Assembly (NCBI RefSeq): GCF_001194135.2 | Contig: NC_069004.1 | Location: 12,596,686-12,660,685, forward strand | Length of the DNA: 64,000 bases | Direction: 5' to 3' | Source of the DNA: Octopus bimaculoides | Lineage: Eukaryota | Shown: piece after piece, positions 24,665 to 26,648 of the stretch | How the letters are laid out: every line of letters begins with the position of its first letter | How positions within the stretch are numbered: the stretch's first letter is position 1 | The notes under the pieces: model-generated | The model's database searches: none | What the model saw: only the letters and a program-made list of their open reading frames with translations | What the model was told of the DNA's origin: nothing | Program-made: the position numbers and the translations under genes

Positions 24665-26019
24665 TCCATCATCATCATTTAACATCAGTCTTCCATGGGT
24701 TGCATGGGTTGGATATTTTGTCAGGAACTGGTAAGCCAGAGGACAGTGCCTTGTCTATTGTTCAATGCATTTTAAATATTAAAAAAATTCCAAGACTTAA
24801 ATCTAACGATGCTGTTTTGGTATTGACTGGAAGAATTTTGCAGGATTTCTACGACGTTGGAATATGAAGAAATGAGTTTATGATGTTAACATCTACGTTT
24901 TACTTCAGGGAAATCTTTACAACAGGAAGGACACACTTTACTGCATAGTTTGAGGTAGTCAAATAATAGGATACAGCTAGACAAACACCAGGAACCATCG
25001 GGAAGGCCATTGGTTAAAACAACAACCTTCATTTTGAAGACAATAACACACCACTAGAGACATATACATCACTAGATACAGGCGCACAAACACACATACA
25101 TTACTAGACTTACATACATCCCTACACACACACCTCCATAGACAAAAATATATACATATATCACTAGATACATACACATACACAGATTAGAAACTGGATG
25201 TGTTTGTTTACATCTGTTCTGTTCTAGATACAAAGTCACCCTAAAATAGTAAAACGATCAGGGGCCAGCTGTATTTGTTTATATAAACCCCTCCTCTCGC
25301 AACCACTCTGTTGACACTATTCTTTAATAAACTGAAATTTTCCATTAACCCTTTCGTTAACCAACCCGGCTGAAACCGGCTCTGGCTCTGAGTACAAATG
25401 CTTTGTTTTCATAAGTTTTTGAATTAACATCTTCCACCAAACCTTAGTCACAATTTATGTTGCTGCTGCTGCTCTAAGTGTTTACTCAAAAATAAACATG
25501 ACTCAATGTTCACTTCTGAGTGAGTATTATTAGATTTACATGATCTAAACCAGTTTAGATTATGATAATGTAACAAATAGAATTATTATTATTATTAGAG
25601 ATAATAATAATAATAATAATAATTGCACTCATGCAGTACCAGGCAGTGGCTCTCATGGCTTTTGATCTTAACTGATTGGAAGTGTTATTATGTACATTGT
25701 TTTGTCTTGGGATAAAAAGATGGGCTACAGCAAATATTCTGCTCAATACCAAAAATTAGCTTGTCAGTTGCTTGATCTTGACCAGTTAAGCATGTCCATT
25801 AGTGGCTGACAATATGTGCATCTCTGATCATGAGCAAAAGTAGTGAGGGAACCATGTGTCAAGAGGAATTCTTTGGGGTTTGAATAATGGGTTCATCATC
25901 CTTAAATAAACCTTATTCAGGGACCTTTTGAGCAGGATGGGCTACTCAACCTGAAGAAAATTCTAACTGGGTCCCACCTGCGAGGTCATGTGCTGTTTAT
26001 TTTGATATAAGATCACCAT

Positions 26020-26442
26020 TTACATTATTTACATTTGACGGATATTCGTCCTCATCTTGTTTGTTGTTAACACAACGTTTCGGCTGATATACCCTCCAGC
26101 CTTCGTCAGGTGTCTTGGGGAAATTTCGAACCTGGGTTCTCATTCCTATCGATGTTACTATTATTATTATTATTATTATATTATTATTATTATTAATCAG
26201 GTCGCTGCCGTGAATCGAACTCGGAACCTTGGGGTTAGTAGCCCGCGCTCTTAACCACTACGCCATATGCCCGTGGGCAATTATGGGGTGAATTTTAAGG
26301 TTTATAAATCTATTATTTTTCTATCCTTTCTCAATACCAGTATATCAGCCGAAACGTTGTGTTAACAACAAACAAGATGAGGACGAATATCCGTCAAATG
26401 TAAATAATGTAAATAATTCCTCATCTCTTAAATATAGAACTG
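26020..26442 (-). mobile_element. Penelope-like non-coding insertion: tRNA-like head, (AAT)n, hammerhead and inverted arm
   Basis: 14-bp direct repeat TATAAGATCACCAT at 26006-26019 and 26443-26456. Perfect 75-bp inverted arms at 26018-26092 and 26340-26414. It interrupts a copy of the repeat arrayed at 44545-46262. Confidence 0.8.
26070..26113 (-). ncRNA. Minimal type I hammerhead ribozyme, intact core
   Basis: On -: ACAC-CTGACGA-a-GGCTG gagggtatat CAGCC-GAAA-CGTT-GTGT. 4-bp stem I, 5-bp stem II, palindromic AACGTT. Confidence 0.78.
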
Positions 26443-26648
26443 TATAAGATCACCATGTCGTGCACATATGGTTGTGATGAGTGTGTCTGGTGTACCCTTA
26501 GATGGGTAGTCATGATAGTTATACTGGGCTTCGTATATTTGTACCCCTGTGTCACTTTGATGGCATGCACTGCTCTCTCACACAATGATGATAATAATAA
26601 TGATAATAATAATAACATTAATAATAATAATAACAATAATAATAATAA

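Follow-up and report, generated by a model that had tools for sequence, protein, structure and literature searches.

The 64,000-nucleotide stretch of Octopus bimaculoides DNA analyzed here (contig NC_069004.1, referred to throughout as the window) contains, within an intron of the MK2 gene, a 423-bp insert that is likely to be a young copy of a composite, non-coding octopus retroposon family that uses the enzymes of Penelope-like elements (PLEs) in trans. The family unit consists of a tRNA-derived head, an (AAT)n tract, and a 3' module of approximately 135 to 165 nt that ends at ...GTAAAT(AAT) or 28 nt beyond it, the additional 28 nt forming a tail. At least five independent copies, found in O. 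sinensis/vulgaris, O. bimaculoides, and other read sets, have the head, the (AAT)n tract, and a hammerhead motif carried by the module joined to one another, and the hammerhead has the hallmarks of the minimal PLE type. The original prediction, made from the sequence of the window, had described a non-coding mobile unit that combines a tRNA-derived head containing RNA polymerase III (Pol III)-type boxes with a Penelope-type hammerhead, and this combination proved to be a feature of the family, with the target-site duplication enclosing the composite as a whole.

Layout and family of the insert

The insert spans positions 26020-26442, between two copies of the 14-bp target-site duplication TATAAGATCACCAT that are identical at 14/14 positions, and its reading as an insertion rests on the duplication together with the family boundaries. 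Read 5' to 3' on the minus strand, it consists of a 28-nt segment (26442-26415), an antisense arm (26414-26340), orphan sequence, the head (26272-26198), (AAT)n, and the 3' module, so that the insert length, the duplication, and the (AAT)n between head and ribozyme are all as predicted. The features are listed below with their strand, where they have one, and with the evidence for each; fetched loci carry the prefix L and translated relatives the prefix P.

26006-26019, no strand: left copy of the duplication TATAAGATCACCAT (repeat search, 100% identical pair)
26018-26092, no strand: left arm of the inverted repeat, which is the main copy's 3' end from loop II onward (repeat search)
26020-26281, minus: main copy of the short interspersed nuclear element (SINE), comprising head, (AAT)n, and 3' module (alignment; BLAST against L001 9837-10155, 90-92% identity)
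26020-26155, minus: 3' module of 136 nt, comprising the B-box-like stretch GAGAACCCAGGTTCGAAATTT, the hammerhead, and the 3' end (92% identity to L001 9996-10122)
26069-26114, minus: PLE-type minimal type I hammerhead (descriptor searches; hallmarks of PMC4209133; pair counts)
~26156-26197, minus: internal (AAT)n microsatellite (also in the translated copies P0056, P0194, P0199, and P0204)
26198-26272, minus: tRNA-derived head (Rfam tRNA match of 14.3 bits; A+B regular expression; 90% identity to the O. sinensis head)
26282-26339, minus: orphan spacer between inverted copy and head (local alignments)
26340-26442, plus: inverted copy, truncated at its 5' end, of the final 103 nt of the family (90% match over its full length to L001 10052-10154)
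26443-26456, no strand: right copy of the duplication TATAAGATCACCAT (repeat search, 100% identical pair)

The 5' limit of the main copy is approximate, ATTGCC(C)ACGG being common to the window and L003. Its 3' end is ...GTAAAT, without the 28-nt tail, and L003, L005, and L008 stop at the identical point. The (AAT)n tract is a constant part of the octopus family, though variable in length, and the module starts at one and the same point (ACATCGA...TAGGAATGAGAACC) in the window, L001A, L001B, L003, L005, and L008. The element itself has no Ns, and the window around it is a gapped draft assembly with many N runs.

The closest full relative is the copy in O. sinensis L001 (9837-10155), which has a head of 90% identity, (AAC/AAT)n, a module of 92% identity, and an intact hammerhead, and whose orthologue is found in O. 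vulgaris L002; a second copy in L001 (6005-6110, minus strand) no longer has its hammerhead's 5' half. In O. bimaculoides, the NUP42 gene model (P0056) ends in an antisense translation of module, (AAT)n, and head, and the Logan contigs L003 (protein P0204) and L005 (P0194) also carry head, (AAT)n, and module together. Elsewhere, the 3' module is 76-82% identical to that of L003, L005, L006, and L008. The original prediction would have been undone by heads that stood apart from hammerheads in other genomic copies, and the two are instead joined in L001/L002, P0056, L003, and L005. Linkage in at least five independent copies rules out chance nesting, and by these sequence comparisons the composite is a real SINE family. 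When all six frames of the element were searched against proteins, the matches were the O. bimaculoides NUP42 model and, at 92% identity, O. sinensis LOC115224785. Both matches mark the window as octopus DNA and overturn the penaeid shrimp origin that its richness in (AAT)n could suggest. At E<=1e-3, an exhaustive profile-free search with the module's 86-aa open frame returned 88 representative proteins, of which at least P0240 is spurious. Very roughly, the window and L001 taken together, ~111 kb of independent octopus DNA, contain 3 copies. Within the 64-kb window there is no second copy of the element, self-BLAST having matched (AAT)n tracts only, and no direct repeat of the unit in the manner of a partial pseudo-long terminal repeat (pseudo-LTR) tandem, tandems being seen in the loci of assembly ERZ21867824 only. 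Viral and metagenome contigs scanned for exact patterns yielded 0 matches.

The host gene was placed by tblastn with human MK2, which located exons on the minus strand at 36234-36148, 34461-34270, 23760-23626, 21527-21450, and 15966-15829, and homologues of the last exon are named MK2 in JGI records. The element lies in sense orientation within the 10.5-kb intron from 34270 to 23760, and the predicted position on the MK2 strand is thereby borne out by exons on either side of it.

Hammerhead, head, and inverted copy

The predicted minimal hammerhead is present and intact on the minus strand (26114-26069), where it reads GACAC / CUGACGA / A / GGCUGG-loop8-UCAGCC / GAA / ACGU / U17, followed by GUGUU. 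It combines a 5-bp helix I (26114-26110 with 26073-26069) and a 6-bp helix II (26101-26096 with 26087-26082) with the core CUGACGA (26109-26103), an extra A (26102), GAA (26081-26079), the palindrome ACGU (26078-26075), and U17 (26074), and the predicted cleavage site falls between 26074 and 26073. The hallmarks of PLE minimal hammerheads are an extra nucleotide between A9 and 10.1, a G10.1-C11.1 pair, and a palindromic 15.2-16.2 (PMC4209133), and all three occur in the window, as A 26102, as G26101-C26082, and as C26077/G26076 within ACGU. A long helix II is also known from this class, with 6 bp in D. virilis and 7-8 bp in S. mansoni (PMC4209133). A strict minimal-hammerhead descriptor found one site in the window and 0 in 300 Markov shuffles, and a relaxed descriptor, for which 0.04 matches are expected per shuffled window, found 8 matches across the fetched loci, all in family members and none outside the family. 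In all of these (8/8), an extra nucleotide follows A9, helix II has 6 bp with G10.1-C11.1 as its closing pair, and C15.2-G16.2 is palindromic. Young copies have an intact motif, the sole core difference between the window (CUGACGA) and L001 (CUGAAGA) lying at the free N7, and older copies are decayed. Over 14 sequences, helix II pair 4 is UA in 6, CG in 5, UG in 3, and unpaired in 0, and helix I pair 3 is CG in 9 and UA in 2. Cleavage is not expected of a lone minimal hammerhead, which is without helix III and depends on a second copy (PMC4209133). If such minimal motifs act at all, they would do so as dimers formed between tandem copies, and the solitary intronic hammerhead of the window is most likely inert.

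The ENA assembly ERZ21867824 contains homologous units, some arranged as short tandems (L004, 129 nt x 2.7; L009, ~113 nt x 3) and some as head-to-head inverted pairs (unit sites: L004 10030-10379; L009 ~10150-10500; L010 9700-10190). The tandem units have intact cores with all three PLE hallmarks, and they show compensatory changes, from U-A to C-G in helix II and from C-G to U-A in helix I. One unit in L004 is preceded by a candidate tRNA-like head, recognized by eye, with A box TGGCGTAACGG and B box GGTTCAATTCT; this candidate has no Rfam tRNA support even at E<=10, and the presence of the head-hammerhead architecture in a second organism is therefore tentative. In the same assembly, the gene call P0196 (L009 10001-10552) reads TGA as tryptophan on a eukaryotic contig, and many of the ERZ21867824 'proteins' in the collection are therefore artefacts.

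The tRNA-like head with A and B boxes stands at 26272-26198 as predicted. Its A box TGGCGTAGTGG (26265-26255) matches TRGCNNAGTGG at 11/11 positions, its B box AGTTCGATTCA (~26222-26212) matches 7/9 specified positions of GGTTCGANNCC and keeps the TTCGA core, and a combined A+B regular expression matches 26265-26212 with tRNA-like spacing. ARAGORN made zero tRNA calls on the window, and this result, the boxes, and a sub-threshold Rfam match taken together indicate that the head is tRNA-derived and is not a tRNA gene. Downstream of the head on the minus strand, four or more T in a row first occur at 25960-25957, beyond the element, in agreement with the original observation that no such run separates head from ribozyme, and to judge from this spacing the window copy could be readable by Pol III through to 25960. 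A B-box-like stretch also lies immediately 5' of the hammerhead, in octopus as GAGAACCCAGGTTCGAAATTT (window 26139-26119, minus strand) and in the ERZ21867824 lineage as AAGGTTCCCGAGTTCGA (L004 9812-9830, minus strand), the latter being nearly identical to the octopus head's own T-arm AAGGTTCCGAGTTCGA; it could be the remnant of a second tRNA-like part.

Upstream of the head, the insert contains an inverted piece of its own 3' module. The two arms of the inverted repeat (26018-26092 and 26340-26414) are 75 nt long and 100% complementary, which agrees with the predicted perfect inverted copy covering the 3' half of the ribozyme, and the left arm reaches 2 nt (AT) into the target-site duplication. 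The inverted copy consists of the arm and the 28-nt tail AATTCCTCATCTCTTAAATATAGAACTG (26415-26442), and it ends at the family's full 3' terminus, 28 nt beyond the end of the main copy. The possibility that these 28 nt are foreign sequence was ruled out, as they are the family's 3' terminus and, with the arm, correspond to the final 103 nt of the copy in O. sinensis. Within the window the tail is found on the inverted copy only; it is present in L001A, L006, and P0180 and absent in L003, L005, and L008.

Comparable inverted pieces recur among the relatives, with arm identities (and aligned lengths) of 100% (75 nt) in the window, 97.8% (93 nt) in L004, 89.8% (187 nt) in L010, 80.5% (87 nt) in L006, and 76.5% (115 nt) in L005. 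The identities fall with the age of the copy, as expected for pairs made at insertion. The extent of the inverted piece also differs, being ~93-117 nt in L005 and L006 and ~190 nt in L010, with a fragment of ~43 nt adjoining the head in L003; the O. sinensis copy has no inverted piece of the 3' module and has an inverted piece of the head instead. In PLE insertions, the 5' end is known to adjoin an inverted copy that is itself 5'-truncated, and a tail of 30-40 bp often occurs at one end only (PMC8557442); the 75-nt arm with its 28-nt tail is of this kind, which bears out the suggestion that the arm arose by PLE-style insertion. Since the arm differs among copies in position, in length, and in its very presence, it is, on comparison of the copies, a variable integration scar, a by-product of integration and not a conserved functional part. 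The inverted fragment in O. sinensis (L001 9771-9836) contains head positions 25-76 and (AAC/AAT)n and meets the copy's 5' end in a palindromic junction, GCCCGCGGGC, and it may be a separate head-plus-microsatellite SINE or another integration scar.

Proposed origin and competing accounts

The family probably borrows the enzymes of Penelope-like retrotransposons. In the scheme we propose, the unit would be transcribed from its own Pol III promoter, or within a host or read-through transcript, and its PLE-derived 3' module would be recognized in trans by the reverse transcriptase (RT) and GIY-YIG endonuclease of an autonomous PLE. Copying into a staggered break would then generate both the 14-bp duplication and the 5'-side inverted, 5'-truncated partial copy with its tail, and the hammerhead would have been inherited from a PLE pseudo-LTR. 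As PLEs are biased toward insertion in microsatellites (PMC8557442), the composite itself might have originated through insertion of the module into a simple tRNA-SINE, at its (AAT)n tail.

Several results weigh against this proposal, and the first of them concerns the partner. The original prediction had advised looking for longer copies with open reading frames (ORFs) for RT and GIY-YIG, and no RT or GIY-YIG domain was found in the 87 translated relatives scanned (the 88th, P0240, having been omitted as spurious), nor was an autonomous PLE with RT and GIY-YIG that shares the module's 3' end found among the window, the fetched loci, and the translated relatives. Long ORFs of L001 scanned against Pfam were of long interspersed nuclear element (LINE) type (APE, RT) or Helitron, with no PLE, and ORFs of >=110 aa in L004, L009, and L010, read by eye, included no PLE. 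For O. vulgaris, 30 Penelope families with recent activity are reported (PMC13282606). The Rfam tRNA model scores the head at 14.3 bits, below its gathering score of 29; this match covers model positions 8-63, which include the D, anticodon, and T arms, and has an E value of 7.4 over 4227 families or ~0.002 for the tRNA model alone. In the O. sinensis copy, TTTT runs stand ahead of the hammerhead, and Pol III would therefore be unable to read through that copy. The orphan spacer of ~58-62 nt is not explained by the model, and its alignments to the family, to the family's reverse complement, and to all flanks scored within the shuffle range, revealing no relatives. Either template-switch filler or 5' transduction of source-locus sequence could account for it; if it is source-locus flank, the template RNA did not start at the head, and its presence suggests that the template of the window copy began upstream of the head, as a longer read-through RNA, which would count against a Pol III origin for that copy.

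The hammerhead too has points against it. A check with the Rfam hammerhead families (RF00163, RF00008, RF02275-7), in line with the Infernal search advised in the original prediction, gave no match in the region at E<=10 and none in the window at gathering score. The intact tandem relatives in L004 and L009 are likewise invisible to these models, so the negative result reflects model coverage, and the Rfam models miss the whole class of PLE minimal hammerheads. The in vitro activity of PLE minimal hammerheads is low or none (PMC4209133). Covariation in the hammerhead helices is suggestive only, with double changes in 2/13 pairs and an observed score that was reached by 46/500 shuffles, which is weak.

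Some of these same results would suit a conventional LINE-dependent tRNA-SINE in which the hammerhead-like motif is a coincidence or a non-functional relic and the arm a twin-priming-type inversion made by a LINE RT. LINE RT fragments are abundant nearby and a PLE partner was not found in the window, fetched loci, or relatives; the zero Rfam hammerhead matches, the decay of the motif in old copies, and the non-significant covariation would also be accommodated, and the geometry recalls twin priming in that the 103-nt piece has the complete 3' end and the larger piece is inverted. We nevertheless consider this account unlikely, because coincidence fits poorly with a motif that appears in 0/300 shuffles, that bears three independent PLE hallmarks, and that has intact cores in homologous tandem arrays, and because the element's 3' end lacks poly(A) or a simple repeat, the tail at one end only is a PLE trait, and no module-like sequence occurs elsewhere in the 64-kb window or the 47-kb L001, LINE 3' ends included. 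Another possibility is recurrent nesting, in which a PLE fragment or retrozyme prefers the (AAT)n tails of tRNA-SINEs, so that head and hammerhead are neighbors and are not co-mobile. The microsatellite bias of PLEs (PMC8557442) and a junction that is always an (AAT)n tract are what it would lead one to expect, L001 9771-9836 resembles head plus (AAC/AAT)n without the module, and other SINEs of the window lie within (ATT)n tracts. Indeed, nesting is a good account of how the composite first arose, but as an account of the present copies it is decidedly improbable, since a perfect 14-bp duplication that is not microsatellite encloses head, (AAT)n, module, and arm together, and the module start is fixed in the window, L001A, L001B, L003, L005, and L008 and not variably 5'-truncated.

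A functional role for the arm had been part of the original prediction, whereby the arm would silence the ribozyme in MK2 pre-mRNA and Pol III transcripts initiated at the head would stay active. In the minimum free energy (MFE) fold of the 423-nt RNA (-169.5 kcal/mol), the 75-bp duplex forms and dominates, with the hammerhead predicted to be buried from loop II onward; helices I and II form in the MFE structure once the arm is removed, and the unit is without a T4 run. The part of the proposal that survives is that the 75-bp duplex would, by this modeling, sequester the 3' half of the ribozyme in MK2 pre-mRNA. The switch design does not survive with it, and we give it very little credence, because the arm is not conserved, varying among copies in position, length, and even presence, and a lone motif without helix III is the kind said to need a second copy before it can cleave (PMC4209133). 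Least credible of all is that the arrangement reflects chance juxtaposition, a DNA transposon with terminal inverted repeats resembling a miniature inverted-repeat transposable element (MITE), or an assembly artefact that created the arm. The gapped draft assembly with its many N runs invites such a suspicion, and inverted repeats with a duplication look superficially MITE-like, but the element is free of Ns, the composite recurs in other species and the inverted architecture in independent assemblies, and the right arm is non-terminal, the 28 nt beyond it being the true 3' end of the family.

Relation to known elements

The original prediction took the architecture to be undescribed. Schistosoma's Sm-alpha and Sj-alpha elements, as summarized in PMC2770079 and PMC6765202 (from Ferbeyre et al. 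1998 and Laha et al. 2000), are SINE-like, related to tRNA-Gln pseudogenes, apparently transcribed by Pol III, and hammerhead-bearing, and to the extent of those summaries the general tRNA-plus-hammerhead architecture has a precedent there; animal retrozymes have also been proposed as non-autonomous PLE derivatives (PMC7229834, bioRxiv 10.64898/2026.07.22.740005). The octopus family resembles Sm-alpha and Sj-alpha, as they are summarized, in being a non-coding, high-copy, tRNA-related retroposon with a type I hammerhead, apparent Pol III transcription being reported for the Schistosoma elements. The summarized Sm-alpha hammerhead is canonical, active, and covered by Rfam, with loop-loop contacts and a typically tandem arrangement, whereas the octopus motif is the PLE minimal variant, has no helix III, and is invisible to Rfam. 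Unlike Sm-alpha, the octopus copies are dispersed and have an internal (AAT)n tract and PLE-type inverted partners, and no sequence similarity was seen between Sm-alpha and the octopus element.

In its short helix I, its long helix II closed by G10.1-C11.1, the unpaired nucleotide after A9, and the palindromic 15.2-16.2, the octopus motif is like the minimal hammerheads of PLEs, for which opposite-strand pairs 100-700 bp apart are reported too. The PLE motif sits in an element with RT/GIY-YIG or in its truncated remains, whereas the octopus motif lies behind a tRNA-like head in a non-coding unit of ~290 nt. Metazoan non-LTR retrozymes are likewise non-autonomous, hammerhead-bearing, and PLE-related (PMC7229834; bioRxiv 10.64898/2026.07.22.740005), but their repeats are 170-400 nt long, stand in tandem, and have type I hammerheads of the canonical form, they are expressed as circular RNAs, and a tRNA head has not been described for them. 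The window copy, by contrast, is solitary and tRNA-headed with a minimal hammerhead, and so lacks the tandem arrangement of a retrozyme. The units of L004 and L009 (129 and ~113 nt) resemble miniature retrozymes, though they are smaller than the reported 170-400 nt.

As an insertion, the window copy resembles those of PLEs (Craig et al. 2021, PMC8557442) in its inverted, 5'-truncated copy at the 5' end, its tail at one end, and its target-site duplication, and differs from them in having no ORF, no direct pseudo-LTR tandem, and ~58-62 nt of orphan sequence between the inverted copy and the unit. With the octopus tRNA-SINEs (Ohshima & Okada 1994; tRNA-Core and tRNA-Deu, PMC8967140) it has in common a tRNA-derived head that contains A and B boxes, a large number of copies in Octopus, and a tie to (AAT)/(ATT) tracts, whereas those conventional SINEs are thought to depend on LINEs through LINE-derived tails. 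The searchable literature on mollusc and cephalopod SINEs makes no mention of a hammerhead or of a link to PLEs.

It is about an even question whether octopuses, and possibly at least one other invertebrate (ERZ21867824), contain true SINEs that parasitize PLEs rather than LINEs, in which a Pol III head is fused to a PLE pseudo-LTR module, the hammerhead is a shared recognition or processing element, and integration bears the PLE signature. SINEs are defined by their dependence on LINE partners, and they make up more than 10% of octopus genomes. If the proposal is correct, the octopus family would be the first defined SINE-PLE partnership and would extend the rule of SINE dependence to the least understood order of retrotransposons, and it would join the Sm-alpha type, animal retrozymes, and PLE minimal hammerheads in one continuum. 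It would also provide a compact substrate of ~300 nt for the study of PLE reverse transcription, of how the tail and inverted copy form, and of the role of the minimal hammerhead. The family matters for repeat annotation as well, its ribozyme being missed by Rfam and by ordinary SINE tools, and the perfect 75-bp intronic duplex is a plausible ADAR substrate, octopuses belonging to a lineage noted for the extent of its RNA editing.

The family is also relevant to gene models, at least two annotated octopus genes having already exonized the module. In O. sinensis LOC115224785 (L001 10000-10120), an ATG inside the SINE 3' module (MRTQVRNFPKTPEEGWRVYQPKRC...) is the start of isoform X2, and a GTAAGT within the tail of the SINE is where this isoform splices out. 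P0205 has the same ...YPS junction, and P0055 is among the proteins with an exonized module.

Other mobile sequences are also present in the window. Further A-box/B-box matches occur at 40195-40410, 59655-59720, and 9906-9966 on the plus strand and at 55573-55509 on the minus strand, and at least two of these four sites (40207-40260 and 59667-59720) have the appearance of heads from other families of tRNA-derived SINEs. On either side of the site at ~40.2 kb stands a copy of ATAGTAGAAAG.A.TATTATTATT, a pair that resembles a duplication within an (ATT)n tract. By eye, 26685-27443 (plus), 47596-48015 (plus), and 57450-58509 (minus) contain fragments that resemble the C-terminal part of a retrotransposon ORF2 (...LWDYDFQMD.../...LLWNFTIQTDRKIDANRPNI...), together with two adjacent Tc1/mariner-like transposase ORFs.

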